DNA of 63,645 bases, filler included, from Octopus bimaculoides (Eukaryota), in the NCBI RefSeq assembly GCF_001194135.2. It is 8 parts of 8 records of this genome, joined end to end, with 100 filler letters (N's around TTAATTAATTAA, not from the genome) between each part and the next. Parts side by side here need not be neighbours in the genome. Positions count along the whole stretch, not along the records: positions 57,194 to 62,198 come from NC_068985.1; 7 more parts are not named here. One strand, written 5' to 3'. The stretch's first letter is position 1. Each line of letters begins with the position of its first letter. The notes beneath the pieces were generated by a model. The model was given only the letters and a program-made list of their open reading frames with translations, did no database searches and was not told where the DNA came from. A program made the translations under genes and the position numbers. Shown piece after piece: positions 54,832 through 62,198 of this stretch.

Positions 54832-57708
54832 CTAAACGCCTTTGAATTGCTCTTACAACCATCTAAATTTGGGAACAAAATTTGTATTAATAGTTGTCTA
54901 CTGTAACATGCCCACAAACAATCAGTAGCTGCCAGTCTTTGTGACTTTATGAAAGAACCCCTGCAATACATAGGAATCTTACTATAATACTAGTAAGTAT
55001 TTCAAGTGCGGAAGTACTTGAAAATATGTAAAGGTGAGGTTTACTACGGCGAGAAATTTTAATCTGGTTCCCTATATTTTATTCCGGTTATCTCTTAGGA
55101 GGGCTTACAGTATTACCATTGTTAACCAAATCTTCAAATTATACCTTAGCATATTATCAGATAATGAAGACGTCGTCAGTTATACAAAATGGATTGTCTT
55201 TGATTGTAGGTTCTCTCAATTAACCCTTTAGCATTCAGATTACTCAGTCAAATGTAATGCTTAATTTATTCACATTGTTTTGAATTAACCATGCATTGTC
55301 TCATAGTTTCTGGATTTCAATGAGATGATTGTTTATTTGTAGAAAGATAAATTTAGACTGGTGGTTCCAAGAGGCCAGAGTTGGCTGGCATGAACATGAA
55401 ATAGATAGGATGTTTTGGCCAGATAAGGTCGGTTTAAATGCTAACGACTTAAAGCTGGTCTAAGACTAAACAACAAATACGAGACAGCTCTTCTTCCTAT
55501 TTTTCTGAAGAAAGTCTGCCAGTACTTGCTTCAGTCTAGTAAACAACTGCAAATTATCGAGTTAGTATATGATGCCAGACAAATATTCCCCGAATTTATA
55601 GTTACAACTGATGTTGTGTTGTTCACTTAGTGATTCCAACACCAGTGAAAGTTATATTCAATTATATCGAACCCAGTGTTTACTCTGGTACTTATTTTAT
55701 CGATCTGTATGTGTCGAATGGAATAGGTCTAACTCTGGAGTAGTGGAACGTAACACCAAATACCACAAGGTATCCATAACACCGATTTTGGTTTTAACTG
55801 AATACAAGATTAACCTTTTTTCTTATAAGATAAGAGCTTGAAATCAATTGTAGACGCCCTAACTGCTAGAAAAAAACAGTCAAATCTTCCCCAAGTACCA
55901 GTTGTTGTTTAGCCCCATGATCGTGCAGATTTGTTAGCAAAAAATATTGAAGCCGTAAACTTCTTTTTGTATAATGAAGGCGGCATAATACAAAATGCTT
56001 AAAAAAGAATGAATAAAATAGTAGCGTGTGGCTCGAGAAAAATTTAGCTGTTATTTCTTCCAGCAGGAGTGACGCGTAAAGACCCGCCCATTCATGGTTC
56101 GGTTGGTTGTTCAATACCCTATCATCTTTATTTGCCTTATCAAGCTCTCATAAATTATTATAATCGCTAATAAACAACTCCTGTATCTTCCATTTTTTTT
56201 TTCAATGGATAGCAGACGTTATTGATATGGGAGATACTGTTGCTGAACGTGTTAAATATTGTTGTTAGACATTAAGGTATCTAAAGCGGAAGGGGTTGGA
56301 AACTACGGTCGTTTTTAAAGTTATAGCATGTAATTGCAATTATTGTGCTGTAGAATAAAGAGTGACTGTGTGGTGATGGCGGTGGTGTTTTGGAGTCTGG
56401 AAGTGGCTGACGTAGAGGATACAGTGGAAGATAAATGGACTGACTGGGTGTAGTGCAAGTAAATTCTGTGGAATTGCAAGTCTGAGGTATTAATTAAATG
56501 CTTTCACCCACCATTTACTCTTCATTTTGTTTTATGCTATAATGTCACTTTGATTATAGAGTTCAATGATTGATTGTAGTCTCTTCAGTCTATTCCTTCA
56601 ACCTCTCTTACTCAGTTTCGCCATATTTATTTATTTATCGTCTGGTCAATCATTTCTTTACGTGTAAAGGAGGAGACACTTTCCAACATATTCTTACATC
56701 CATTTATTTGGACTAGAAATGATGCTTCTATTCGACACTAAAAAGAATGGCATTTTGCATGTGATAATACGATTACACATATACTCCCTGCTCTCTCTCT
56801 CTCTCTCTCTCTCTCGCACGCACACAGACACATACACACACATTCTCTCTCTCTCTCTGATCCCTTTTGGTTGAAGTGAAAAAATATTTTTTTATGTACC
56901 ACATTTGATGGCATATAGACTCACTTCTTTTTTCTCAAAAAATATCTCTAAAAGTCACTTCGAGTCTTGTGTTAGGAAAATGGTCTATATTCCATGCTTT
57001 AATGCACTAAAATCTTTTTTTTTTTTTTCTGAGTTTTCGCTACTGAAATTGAGATGCATCTAGAACGCCTGTGCTTCTTTTGTGCCATAAAGTNNNNNNN
57101 NNNNNNNNNNNNNNNNNNNNNNNNNNNNNNNNNNNNNTTAATTAATTAANNNNNNNNNNNNNNNNNNNNNNNNNNNNNNNNNNNNNNNNNNNNATATATA
57201 TATATATATATATATATACATGCGAATTGTGAGTGTGTGTGTGGGTGTGTGTGTATGTGTGTGGGTGTTGTGTAAATGTATATATATATGATTCCTCCAA
57301 TTTGATTCCATAAAGATAGATTCTTTTCAAATGAAAAAAGAAAACGTTATTATAATTGTAAGTATATTGTTACAAGATAATATAATATGCTATAGCAGCA
57401 TAGAACGACACGGCCAAAACTAATTAAAAAGTTGTTAGAAAATCGCTTCAAGTCATTAGAGTTGTGATGTTAATCTTTTGGGATAGATGATAGCTATCAA
57501 TGAAAACGAACAAGGCTCCATTTATATTTTAGTAGGGTGGAAGTAAAATAGTTGATTTTATCAACACCATTGCTTAATTGATAACCGTTTTATCGATTCA
57601 GATGTGATTAAAATTAAGCTTGAGCACTGGACGGAGATGGAGAGATTAACTAGACGTCTAATCCGTATATATAGTTGAGAAGATGGACAACCAAAATAAG
57701 AATCTTAC

Positions 57709-57939
57709 CATTACTCCTTCGTTGAAACTGTCGGAATAAGAGCCAGAGTAAGAGCCAGGACCCATGTCGGAACCAAGGCCAGAGGTGAAATCTGATCTCA
57801 TGCCGGATTGCATGCCTTGTTGCATGCCGGACTGCATGTCTGTCCTCATATCTGACCTCATGTCTGATCTCATGTCTGACCTCATGTCTGACCTCATGTC
57901 AGGTCGCATGTCGGATGACATGTCATAACCCATGTTAGA
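57709..57939 (-). CDS. Met-rich low-complexity coding exon with (DMRS)n tetrapeptide repeats
   Basis: Acceptor CTCTTCTTTCTAG, donor ATG|GTAAGA, 231 nt = 77 codons, phase 0-0; repeat units vary mostly synonymously (AGG/AGA/CGA, GAC/GAT, TCA/TCC, CAG/CAA). Confidence 0.8.
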
Positions 57940-57954
57940 CTAGAAAGAAGAGAT

Positions 57955-57955
57955 A

Positions 57956-58024
<69 letters not shown>

Positions 58025-58054
58025 TTTAGTAATAATAATAATAGTAATAGTAAC

Positions 58055-58107
<53 letters not shown>

Positions 58108-58133
58108 GGAGGAGGAGGAGGAGGAGGAGGAGG
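57955..58133. repeat. Compound microsatellite (TAA)n-(GAT)n-(GAG)n
   Basis: Directly visible; abuts the acceptor of the 57939 exon. Confidence 0.95.
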
Positions 58134-59159
58134 ATTCTTTTGATGATGATCCCTTTGTCCTAACGTATATGAGCACAATTCTCGATAATAAAGTTGCAAC
58201 GGAGTGATCCTTACACATCATACTGTTGCAGTGCAGTTTCAAGGGCCAACATTTATAATAGTGTTTGAATAGGACATACTTAACTGATGTATAGGGTAAT
58301 GTAAACGTCTTCCGTACATGGCCGTTTAACAGGACCAATGGGCGAAGTAAAATCGCACTGAGCTGTACATAAAACGATCCAACCCCTGAAAACGAAGCTA
58401 AGAAAAAAGGCATAACCACGAAGCTTAAGGCAAACCCTGTCGAATGATCTATATTGATGTAAATGATTCAGAGCCAGATTTATTACCCACTTCCTTGTTC
58501 CAGTTCCACCTTAAGGTATGAGCACGCTGGGTAGTTGCCCGGGGGTCTCTCTAGGGACCCACTTCTAATATATATACGTGTGACGGCTTGCTGTCATTCA
58601 ATGAATACTCTAGGGCCTTGTGCAATGAATTGCCCGGAGGCCTATAATACTGCTAAAACGACCCTGCCCTGTACTATGATCGCATGAGAGAGAGGTTGAC
58701 TAAATAGCTCTGCCATAAATATATAAGTCTGTATGGCACCATCAAGAAATAGCAATAACACTGGTAGTACATTGTCAAACTCTAACTTTGCATTCAACAG
58801 ATTACTTAAAGTACAGATTATCAAATATATCTCTTTTGTTTACGTCTTTCCTCCCCAGTAAAATCATTTCCCAGCTCACAAAAGTAGAAATGTTCCCACT
58901 CCGCTGCCAGTTGAAGTGAATATATGTCAACAGAGTAGCGAACAAGCGTTGCATACAGAGCAAATACGAAGCTGGTAACGCAGACTAAATAGTGTTGTTA
59001 AATGTCTTTATATATTTCATCTGATGTATAATTGTCATATGCAATGTATGTTTGCATGCGTATTTAAGGGTTACTGTGTGTTGTTTGTGCTTTAACTTTG
59101 ACGTGTGCGACAGAAATTATGTGATGGTGAAATTGATTAACTGAATGTATTAAACAGGA

Positions 59160-59162
59160 AAC

Positions 59163-59220
<58 letters not shown>

Positions 59221-59221
59221 G

Positions 59222-59275
<54 letters not shown>

Positions 59276-59335
59276 GATAGATAGATGGGTGGGTAGATAG
59301 ATAGACAGATAGACAAACAGACAAATAAACTGACA
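59160..59335. repeat. (GATA)n tetranucleotide tract (others at 3872-3952, 48776-48841, 61077-61140)
   Basis: Directly visible. Confidence 0.95.
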
Positions 59336-59635
59336 GATGATATATGTGCATGGAAGTACTCAATAACTTATTAGAGTGTGAAACAACAAAATATCTAAAA
59401 GTTCTTACCATTCTACCATCAAGATCAGTGTAACGTTGACGCATGTCAGACATTCTGTCCCACTGTAAAGGAAATTAAAAAAAGCATGCAGATATCGTTT
59501 GTAACGTCGTAACAAATGTACAATATGGCAGCATTCCTACCTCATTAAAAAAAAATGAGGTCCGAAATAGAAATTAGATATACAATGCACTAAACCGTTA
59601 TAATAAAAGTGGCTTTAATTTCTTGATAAATGAAT

Positions 59636-59680
<45 letters not shown>

Positions 59681-59839
59681 TGTATTTTTTTTTATCTTAT
59701 TTTGTTTCAGTTCTTATCGTGAGCTGTGGCAAAGGTGGGGCATCTCTTTGAAAGAAAGGATTCATCAGAACAAATCGAAACTTTTTTATTTGCTTATTTA
59801 TTCATTTATATATATATATATATTTATTTATAAACTCTG

Positions 59840-60110
59840 CTTCTTATACTGTCGGTTTCGTTGCGGAAACGGTGTTACGCTGAACGTAAACAAACCAACT
59901 CCGGTTGTCACGTGATGGAGGTTACAAGCACAAACTTTAAGACACGCCACATACAAACGCACACACAGACACAGGCACGCGCGCGCTTTCACTCACACAT
60001 ATACGATAAGCTTATGCACAATTTGCGTCAACCAAACTCGCTCATATGGCGTTGGTCGGCCCGTGGCTATAATAGAAGATATTTGCCCATCGTGCTGTAC
60101 ACAGGGGAAA
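59840..60110 (-). mobile_element. SINE family E, degenerate
   Basis: CGCTGAACGTAAACAAACCAACTCCGGTTGTC, GGTCGGCCCGTGGCTATAATAGAAGATATTTGCCC. Confidence 0.65.
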
Positions 60111-60605
60111 GCTGAGTCTCTAAGCTGATTCACGCCTTATTCAGAGGTGGCCATTACTACGAGTCTATATTGCTTCTTCTTACATCCAATGAAGTCCTAC
60201 GTGCGCCATCGTTACGTAAGATGTGTGTTTATCATTCTAAACCTTGGAGGGCAATCTATATCCAGACCTAAGCAGAAGGAATGTCGTCGTGAGTGAGACA
60301 GAGACAGAGATGGAAGAAGGAAGGGAGAGAGAGAGGCAGAGATAGAGAGAAACGAAGACAAGCATCCACTGCAAGTACTGGTGTACTGCAGCTGTCTCTC
60401 CCACTTCAATTGCCACATCCTGCATCTGCCGTTGGGTCAAGAGCTTTACCAGATTAATGGAAACTTCAAATACACCTTGCACAGAGCTGGGGACGAATAC
60501 AGTTAGGCATTTGTGCCGAAGTCCTAGCAACTATCACAGTTCACGCCTCATATTTCATAAAGGTAGATACAGATATATAAATATATCTGTATGTACGTGT
60601 ACACA

Positions 60606-60659
<54 letters not shown>

Positions 60660-60993
60660 CGCGTGTGTGTGTGTGTGTGTGTGCGTGTGTGTGTATGTGT
60701 GTGTGTGTATGAAACATGTGTATGAAACATGTGTATAAACACAGGTTTATATTAAAGCTCTTATGAGATCTTACATTATGGTTGTTTGGAGCCCTTCGAT
60801 ATATGCTCCAAATACATATAGGGGCCCAACTATAATGGATCCTCAAGCGACAATCTATGGCATCAAGTTGTATATGAGTAGTGTAATATGTAGATTCAGA
60901 GAAGCCCCCTTACTGTGAGTGCTGCAAGATTCTCTGAATTCATGTCTTATATATATGCGTGCATGTGCGTGTATATGTATGTGTGTGTGTGTT

Positions 60994-61048
<55 letters not shown>

Positions 61049-61074
61049 AGAGAGAAAGAGAGAGAGAGAGAGAG

Positions 61075-61139
<65 letters not shown>

Positions 61140-61353
61140 TAGAGCTTGTGTGTGGGTGCGTGTTTCACCATGGTTACATCAAGAACGGAACAATAGTGTT
61201 TAACCTACCATCATTCTGCCGTCTCTGTCATGGTACATCCTCATGTAGTCATCCATGATATCAAAGAAACTATCAGAAATGTAATCGATGCGTGCCATAT
61301 CGATGTTGTTTTTACCGTGATAACCTGTAGAAGGAAGACGTTAATAATTACCT

Positions 61354-61424
<71 letters not shown>

Positions 61425-61668
61425 CACAGAGATAGATAGATTGATAGATGGATATGCATATTTAGGCAGACAGATAGATACATAAATATATCTTTAATGC
61501 ATAGTGCCTCTACAAATTGAAATAATAAGTAATATTTCGTATTACATCGAATAGACAAAATGACTTCGATAACCTTCAGGGATGAGTCAACGTTGATTTA
61601 TCTGAAGAAACGGTTACAAACTGTGGATACTCCAGAGTGTATATGTGCGTGTGTGTGTGTGTGTGTGT

Positions 61669-61706
<38 letters not shown>

Positions 61707-61914
61707 TTATGTATGTATGTACCCACAAAGTAACAGATTAAACCTTGACTATTATAGATGCTTTTTAGAAGAAAAATTTCATTCGTGTAATAATTGATTC
61801 TGCTTCCACTCTTGTATATCTGTTTAGAATTGTAATATTATCTATAATTTATAACGTTACGATAATTTCATTCAACATTAAAACTTAAGAAATCTCAACT
61901 TTTGATATAAATTT

Positions 61915-62148
61915 GGTGTAAACACGCCAGCACCGGTTAAGTAGTTGTGAGATAGTCAAGCACACACACACAGATACACATACACACAAACACAATGGGC
62001 TTCGTTCAATTTCCGTATACCAAATCTACTCAGAAGGAGTTGGTCGGCCCGATACAATAAAAGAAGACAGCTGCCGAAGGTGCCACGCAGTGGGACTGAA
62101 CATAGAACCATGTGGTTCGAAACCAGCCTTCTTACGACACAGCCACAA
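61915..62148 (-). mobile_element. SINE family E with head
   Basis: GAAGACAGCTGCCGAAGGTGCCACGCAGTGGGACTGAAC..CCATGTGGTT..CTTCTTAC..CACAGCCAC. Confidence 0.8.
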
Positions 62149-62156
62149 CAAAGCCT

Positions 62157-62198
<42 letters not shown>

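Follow-up and report, generated by a model that had tools for sequence, protein, structure and literature searches.

S-crystallins are the refractive proteins of the cephalopod eye lens and derive from sigma-class glutathione S-transferase (GST). Reflectins are cephalopod-restricted, self-assembling optical proteins that are rich in Met, Asp, Arg and Tyr and carry the motif [M/F]D-x5-MD-x5-MD-x3/4. Both families bear on a Met-rich exon (exon C, 57709-57939) in the DNA of Octopus bimaculoides analysed here, a stretch of 63,645 nucleotides joined from eight parts of NCBI RefSeq assembly GCF_001194135.2 and called the window below. The original prediction, made before any database search, had taken this exon for a possible cephalopod-specific, phase-separating domain. 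The piece considered in this work, about 5 kb at positions 57194-62198, holds the exons A, B and C of a minus-strand gene (Table 1), and we find that exon C is very probably exon 5 in the seven-exon layout of a long-loop S-crystallin gene.

The structural work on octopus by Tan et al. 2016 (PMC4976375) placed the S-crystallin-specific insertion between helices alpha4 and alpha5 and reported an influence of the short octopus loop at this site on glutathione (GSH) binding and stability; the 'long loop' of that paper has 11 residues. The same study distinguished the electrophile pocket of an active GST (F98/N99/V102/F106) from that of the S-crystallin (L100/D101/M104/Q108). The ordinary octopus S-crystallins (OctS1-4, 215 aa; PDB 5B7C) resemble the window gene in their alpha4 exon, their crystallin-type pocket and the insertion point, but their loop consists of one 30-nt exon that encodes 10 aa, F(Q/N)RS(R/K)DM..S. 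For squid, the account of Cai et al. 2017 summarised in PMC5703641 describes how the polydispersity of the disordered loops sets physical cross-linking and thereby gives gels of different density across the lens. According to the same account, the squid loops make patchy particles gel, and the lens is not explained by phase separation alone.

Identity of the gene

Exon A is 79% identical to P0003, the O. bimaculoides S-crystallin 3, in the exon A alignment, and likewise 79% identical by tblastn to P0001, O. bimaculoides XP_014783447.1. Exon-level similarity to Octopus and Argonauta ranges from 71 to 81%. When compared with PDB 5B7C (S-crystallin OctvuS4), exon A matches chain residues 98-142 (native 78-122) with E=1.8e-12, a region that comprises helix alpha4 and the first part of the alpha4-alpha5 loop; the exon itself covers residues 78-115 of the octopus S-crystallin. 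A homology search with A+B+C over 5.8 billion protein clusters returned A0A0L8G7J7/XP_014783447.1 and S-crystallin 3 of O. bimaculoides as well as S-crystallin 3 of Argonauta hians, and in addition an unnamed fragment of genomic origin and a low-complexity protein that is unrelated. All named family matches in this search are S-crystallins. At the four pocket positions, the alignment to 5B7C gives M/D/M/H for the window, none of which is of the GST type, and the H at position 108 is also found in named octopus S-crystallins (P0092). Judged from these aligned residues, the pocket of exon A is in the crystallin state and not in the GST state.

Exons A, B and C lie on one strand with canonical AG/GT sites, the A-B and B-C junctions are both in phase 0, and exon C follows exons A and B in frame at a distance of 1.5-3.3 kb downstream. 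Because it is collinear and in phase after exon A, which encodes helix alpha4, and exon B, exon C in all likelihood occupies the loop between alpha4 and alpha5 in the GST fold of an octopod S-crystallin. An exon of an unknown cephalopod-specific, Met-rich, phase-separating protein outside the known families would be in line with the Pfam scan of A+B+C, in which this short, low-complexity fragment matched no family, and with the lack, in large collections, of any protein carrying (DMRS)n in a related context. We regard such an origin as very improbable, since exon C continues two S-crystallin exons collinearly and in phase, and both its tail and its end motif have homologues in the loops of S-crystallins. 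The 'different Met-rich domain' of the original prediction is thereby replaced by a probable alpha4-alpha5 loop read in frame with S-crystallin exons, and a clear match to a well-known protein, which had been named in advance as evidence against that domain, is in substance what the S-crystallin homology searches returned.

The only feature shared with reflectins is a composition rich in Met, Asp, Arg, Tyr and Ser. A regular-expression search found no occurrence of the pattern [M/F]D-x5-MD-x5-MD(-x3/4) in exon C, which contains nine DM and no MD dipeptides. No homology match bore a reflectin name, those checked being S-crystallins or unrelated low-complexity proteins, and the neighbouring exons are GST-derived, unlike a reflectin gene. 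We give a reflectin-related exon next to no probability, in agreement with the original prediction on this point.

Exon C and its tandem repeat

The acceptor of exon C reads atctcttctttctag and the donor gtaagatt, and the length of 77 x 3 nt makes the exon symmetric. The strong splice borders reported before were reproduced (AG/GTAAG, phase 0-0), with a translation identical over all 77 residues. Met stands at residues 3, 7, 11 ... 47, so that 12 consecutive Met follow one another at the invariable spacing of 4 that had been described, and a four-residue register, (D/G)-(M/F/L/S)-x-(S/P/T/Q/N), spans the whole exon. Between 57835 and 57900, Tandem Repeats Finder detected an array of period 12 (5.5 copies, 90% matches, score 111), and the near-identical young core of the repeat lies at 57841-57900. 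The exon closes with the terminal stretch TTCAACGAAGGAGTAATG followed by gta, and a peptide of the type SDFTSGLGSDMGPGSYSGSYSDSFNEGVM would be expected from a product of it.

The units of the repeat had been said to differ mainly at synonymous positions, and selection on the protein had been argued from this. Relative to the consensus unit GAC ATG AGG TCA, the 11 Met units show 7 synonymous and 10 non-synonymous codon differences, with 8, 8 and 11 nucleotide differences at codon positions 1, 2 and 3, respectively. The description does not hold, and the argument built on it fails on the counts. The five central units are nearly identical (2 synonymous and 1 non-synonymous difference), which marks them as recent copies and is silent on selection. 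ATG is invariant in all 11 units and represents the sole clear constraint inside the repeat.

On the plus strand, an antisense ORF (open reading frame) at 57764-57928 is also open across the repeat and encodes an MSDL repeat (..MSDLMSDLMSDL..). It is a by-product of the 12-bp unit and no gene. Since the repeat can be read through in antisense as well, its open frame is by itself weak evidence of coding, and the exon status of exon C rests on its context and its homologues.

These properties of the repeat bear on a different reading, in which the locus is a pseudogene or an unexpressed duplicate in an S-crystallin cluster and (DMRS)n is a neutral minisatellite in a former loop exon, whose frame is open only since the 12-bp unit contains no stop in that frame. 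The open antisense frame, the near identity and hence youth of the central units and the density of microsatellites in the region all agree with such decay. It is opposed by the three visible exons, each of which is intact with canonical splice sites and matching phases, by the constancy of ATG in 11 of 11 units while other codons vary, and by the crystallin-type bias of the loop, with no Lys and one Glu. Further evidence on both sides comes from the homologues described below.

Homology to the squid loops

An exhaustive HMMER search over 1.84 billion representatives returned 78 matches, and most of those inspected are unrelated period-4 low-complexity proteins. The true long-loop S-crystallins among the 78 are P0012 and P0038. 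P0012 is a 311-aa protein from transcript-length contigs of public sequencing-run assemblies (Logan) and occurs in many runs; P0104, likewise of 311 aa, comes from contigs of this kind too. P0038 shares its cluster with AAB22101.1, a squid (Nototodarus/Ommastrephes sloani) lens S-crystallin. The O. vulgaris S-crystallin P0015, also among the 78, aligns to the exon-A end of the query only.

Both P0012 and P0038 carry the segment YD(R/Q)MSDMR(S/N)RYIDMDGRM followed by an insert of at least 85 residues that ends in (A/S)F(T/A/N)(E/D)GRM. Exon B is identical to YDRMSDMRSRYIDMDGRM of squid P0012 at 14 of 18 residues. The loop ends in LSFNEGRM in squid SL18 and in AF(T/A)(E/D)GRM in others, compared with DSFNEGVM in the window, and the squid loop core MSSD(I/M)NSGL..GD.GP.G.YSDSY corresponds to MRSDFTSGLGSDMGPGSYSGSYSDSF in the window. 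AAB22101.1 carries the same motif, as GDMSSDINSGL. The non-repeat tail of exon C shares 44% identity with P0104 over 59 aa (E=3e-7, BLASTP with composition adjustment), where MRSDFTSGLGS-----DMGPGSYSGSYSDSF of the window is aligned with MSSDMNSGLFSEGRTGDMGP---SGVYSDSY. Smith-Waterman comparison of the tail gave z=5.0 for P0104 and 4.5 for P0012, and 2 of 2000 composition-preserving shuffles reached the observed score. That 28 codons outside the repeat stay open and keep both the squid-loop homology and the end motif argues against a dead exon. The motifs that exon C shares with squid lens proteins suggest that the two-part long loop arose before octopus and squid diverged.

The squid long-loop S-crystallins have no long DMRS array and only the two-unit DMSSDMNS or DMSSDMSS. 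The DM(S/R)(S/P) unit recurs in other loops of the family: P0104 has DMSSDMNS and DMSSDMSS, a Nototodarus protein has DMSPDMDP, and the 10-aa mini-exon has RDMSSS. As far as the sequences go, the (DMRS)n tract is therefore a local 12-bp expansion of an ancestral loop motif and no new invention. Outside the family, (DMR[PSTA])n-like period-4 repeats were also observed in the unrelated predicted proteins P0005 (an ENA metagenome protein of 183 aa), P0055, P0064 and P0008, and these are taken as convergent low complexity.

Loop exons among octopod relatives

The number of loop exons varies among the octopod genes. In the 205-aa gene of O. bimaculoides (locus L001), there is no loop exon between exon 3 and the SE(R/K)RMRF exon; the 215-aa genes of Argonauta and O. 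vulgaris (L002, L009) have one 30-nt phase-0 mini-exon, F(Q/N)RS(R/K)DM..S; the 272-aa gene of O. vulgaris, CAI9723148.1 (P0113; L010), has a 54-nt exon 4 (FDRISDMRSMYHQKFENM) and a 147-nt exon 5; and the window gene has the 54-nt exon B and the 231-nt exon C. Exon B is the long form of the central mini-exon of the family. No exon-C-like sequence was found in the short-loop loci L001 (O. bimaculoides), L002 (Argonauta hians) and L009 (O. vulgaris). In a sample of 62 proteins, octopod loops are 0, about 10, 18 and 67 aa long and squid loops reach 103-106 aa; the 95 aa encoded by B+C form the longest octopod loop of the sample.

The closest parallel to the window layout is the 272-aa S-crystallin of Octopus, in which a 116-nt exon 3 (in both L010 and L012) is followed, in phase 0 throughout, by an exon 4 of 54 nt and a symmetric exon 5 rich in Met. 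Exon 5 of CAI9723148.1 (L010 27822-27968) encodes GGVMSSSRMNQGMFSGMQSSMSSMSSMSSGMDSSMSSGFGNYSFNEDSM (..SGMQSSMSSMSSMSSGMDSSMSSGFGNYSFNEDSM) and ends in TTCAACGAAGACAGCATG followed by gta. Like exon C, it has the terminus SFNE..M before gta, shares the terminal TTCAACGAAG...ATG before gta as well as position and phase, and contains an internal Met-bearing tandem repeat in the alpha4-alpha5 loop that is modelled as a low-confidence coil. The two are linked on the grounds of position, phase and end motif. They differ in the repeat, which is (MSS)n with period 3 in the 272-aa gene and (DMRS)n with period 4 in the window, in length (147 nt and a loop of 67 aa against 231 nt and 95 aa) and in charge, as the loop of the 272-aa protein has almost no Asp or Arg, unlike the window loop. 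Exon A of the window is 71-74% identical to the 272-aa gene and no intron similarity was found between the two, which makes the latter a paralogue and not an orthologue.

Orthologues of the 272-aa protein, also with 272 aa, are O. bimaculoides XP_014783449.1 (P0167) and O. sinensis XP_036358738.1. Between O. vulgaris (L010 27822-27968) and O. bimaculoides (L012 20088-20234), exon 5 of this gene differs at 5 of 147 nt. Four of these five are synonymous and fall on third positions, the fifth is non-synonymous, no indel is present, and the copy number of (MSS)n is unchanged. In the 300 nt of intron on its flanks, identity is only 83-90%, and indels do occur. Given few, mostly synonymous changes without an indel next to diverged introns, the C-type exon of the 272-aa paralogue behaves, by sequence comparison, as a constrained coding exon under purifying selection, a further point against decay of its equivalent in the window. 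The repeat-bearing disordered loop of the 272-aa S-crystallin is held at a fixed length between the two species.

Loop exons that come and go between genes might also do so within one. Exons B and C could be cassette exons, included or skipped to give short-, medium- and long-loop isoforms of a single gene, which would be a variant of the assignment to a long-loop S-crystallin. Both have phase-0 borders and a length divisible by 3, proteins with no, one or two loop exons occur in the family, and P0001 is annotated with exon B only. On the other hand, the loop-length classes seen so far are different genes (L001, L002, L009, L010 and L012) and not isoforms, and the splice sites of exon C look strong. 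We hold cassette use to be rather unlikely.

The accession numbers of XP_014783447.1 (223 aa, exon B only) and XP_014783449.1 (272 aa) are two apart, and their genes may be close neighbours. The locus of XP_014783449.1, L012 with 10 kb on either side, does not extend to the P0001 gene. The 1.2-kb contig L011 holds exon A of P0001 only and shows no intron similarity to the window. The 315-aa 'S-crystallin 3-like' protein CAI9723161.1 (P0015) spans 61.7 kb of L009 (10001-71705, O. vulgaris OX597818.1) and fuses parts of two tandem S-crystallin genes, for which tblastn detected two full exon sets; this fusion is probably an annotation artefact.

Disorder and proposed role of the loop

In a disorder prediction, one of the checks proposed with the original prediction, B+C fell within the disordered range of a charge-hydropathy plot. 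The repeat core of exon C is a nearly neutral, well-mixed Asp/Arg polyampholyte, and the 95 residues of B+C comprise 17 Met, 11 Arg, 0 Lys, 15 Asp and 1 Glu. In the AlphaFold model of the paralogue P0113 (272 aa; 62 aligned sequences), the GST fold has a pLDDT (AlphaFold's per-residue confidence) above 90, the exon-4 segment forms a moderate-confidence helix, and the exon-5 segment is a coil with a pLDDT of 47-60. AlphaFold modelling of A+B+C from the single sequence gave a mean pLDDT of 56 and a weak helix across the repeat, and is given no weight here. Together, the S-crystallin context, the charge-hydropathy result and the P0113 model agree with the earlier view of a coding exon in a cephalopod-restricted, Met-rich and most likely disordered protein.

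By analogy with squid, a function of the loop can be outlined. Together, exons B and C would add some 95 loop residues to a GST-like particle, between its helices alpha4 and alpha5. This loop may be intrinsically disordered and project from the folded dimer, where it could serve as a weakly sticky, flexible patch and spacer. Its length would then set the link density of crystallin particles in the transparent gel, and long loops would fit the low-density outer layers of the lens. The Met/Arg/Asp-biased composition might keep the refractive increment high even within the loop; the use of R for K and of D for E and the enrichment of Met correlate with a high refractive increment in S-crystallins (PMC4047532). 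Replication slippage of the 12-bp unit would provide a quick route to an altered loop length. As to the phase-separating domain claimed earlier, the exon falls in a segment known to drive self-assembly, which upholds that side of the claim, but 'phase-separating' is imprecise for loops that, in the squid account of PMC5703641, gel as patchy particles.

Weighing of the assignment

Several observations weigh against the assignment of exon C to a working long-loop S-crystallin gene and against the role outlined above. By sequence alone, exon C and exon 5 of the Octopus 272-aa gene are not significantly similar (p ~0.07). The 5-kb piece contains A, B and C as the only exons of the gene detected by tblastn. 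Exons 1, 2, 6 and 7 of the layout lie beyond it, and it spans neither the thioredoxin-like N-domain nor helices alpha5-alpha8 of a complete GST fold. The best octopod match to exons A+B, P0001 (XP_014783447.1, 223 aa), has exon B and no exon C. Neither a (DMRS)n S-crystallin nor a protein or transcript with the exact exon C was found in a collection of 15 billion proteins. The refractive increment (dn/dc) predicted for exon C from per-residue values is about 0.195, which is barely above that of an average protein, and the role in the lens gel, transferred here by analogy, is known from squid and not from octopus.

The absence of exon C from P0001 and from the 15-billion-protein collection, in which no annotated protein or transcript carries it, would also be expected of a pseudogene. 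Public assemblies likewise gave no exact match to the 91-aa read-through ORF. However, the annotated 272-aa paralogue likewise lacks a Logan transcript in the collection, so that missing transcripts are uninformative, and the repeat, with its 60-nt identical core, would be expected to break short-read assemblies. With the intact exons, the conserved tail and the constrained paralogous exon on the other side, we consider a pseudogene or unexpressed duplicate unlikely and retain the long-loop S-crystallin gene as the preferred assignment.

Coordinates and intron features

The coordinates of the gene are collected in Table 1. Microsatellites are unusually frequent in its introns. One of them, the compound array (ATA)33 (GAT)18 (GAG)10 at 57953-58134, directly adjoins the exon C acceptor; its coding-strand sequence is (CCT)n(ATC)n(TAT)n, which continues into the polypyrimidine tract. 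An (AGAT)38 array occupies 59163-59313 inside the B-C intron, and a (TA)n/(GA)n/(ATAG)n block at 60996-61139 comes to within about 70 nt of the exon A donor. A SINE-like interspersed repeat is present in two copies (~59995-60095 and ~61957-62146), which match several sites in the S-crystallin loci of O. vulgaris and O. bimaculoides at 77-79% identity. ARAGORN found no tRNA gene in these repeats.

Table 1 Features of the S-crystallin-like gene in the 57194-62198 piece of the window.
Feature	Coordinates	Strand	Description
Exon A	61209..61324	minus	116 nt; encodes (G)+38 residues; helix alpha4 of GST-like C-terminal domain
A-B intron	59463..61208	minus	1746 nt; SINE-like repeat (~59995-60095), several microsatellites
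Exon B	59409..59462	minus	54 nt; phase 0-0; WDRMSDMRQRYTDLDGRM; first loop exon
B-C intron	57940..59408	minus	1469 nt; (AGAT)38 and compound (ATA)n(GAT)n(GAG)n at exon C acceptor
Exon C	57709..57939	minus	231 nt; phase 0-0; 77 codons, SNMGYDMSS...DSFNEGVM; second loop exon
12-bp tandem repeat, 11 units	57793..57924	minus	DMSS DMRP (DMRS)x4 DMRT DMQS GMQQ GMQS GMRS
Non-repeat tail of exon C	57709..57792	minus	DFTSGLGSDMGPGSYSGSYSDSFNEGVM; 28 codons; homologous to core of squid-type long loops

Comparison with known systems

With the assignment given here, what looked like an orphan domain becomes part of a classic example of gene recruitment, in which a GST enzyme gave rise to a lens crystallin. 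A variable and often Met-rich, repetitive loop has long been known in S-crystallins, and the current understanding is not overturned. Very long S-crystallin loops have been discussed for squid; octopods also have two-exon loops of 67 aa and about 95 aa. As a wider scenario, which we offer tentatively and hold to be possible rather than probable, octopods would, like squids, keep S-crystallins of graded loop length, and the window would hold an unannotated paralogue with the longest sampled octopod loop (at least 95 aa), an ancestral coleoid two-exon loop lengthened recently by DMRS slippage whose charged polyampholyte repeat is unlike the uncharged squid repeats. If this is true, a change of repeat number in exon C would act as a fast evolutionary dial for lens gel density. 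Apart from this scenario, different lineages have probably expanded different Met units in one exon independently, namely DMRS, MSS, GSGMM and SGNMM, an example of how slippage of a repeat can vary the length of a disordered linker on which the density of the lens gel is held to depend.

The squid long-loop S-crystallins have a decapodiform-type GST body, to which exon A of the window is about 63% identical by our own count. Squid loops with Met repeats occur at the same alpha4-alpha5 site, as (GSGMM)n in D. pealeii A0A8E6P5D3 and as (SGNMM)n in marine transcriptome proteins. They differ from the window loop in their period of 5, in their uncharged Gly/Ser/Asn units and in having no exon-B-type segment, and they probably expanded independently. 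In conclusion, Met-rich tandem repeats are typical of S-crystallin loops, and what is new at this locus is the DMRS unit and the octopod loop length of 95 aa.

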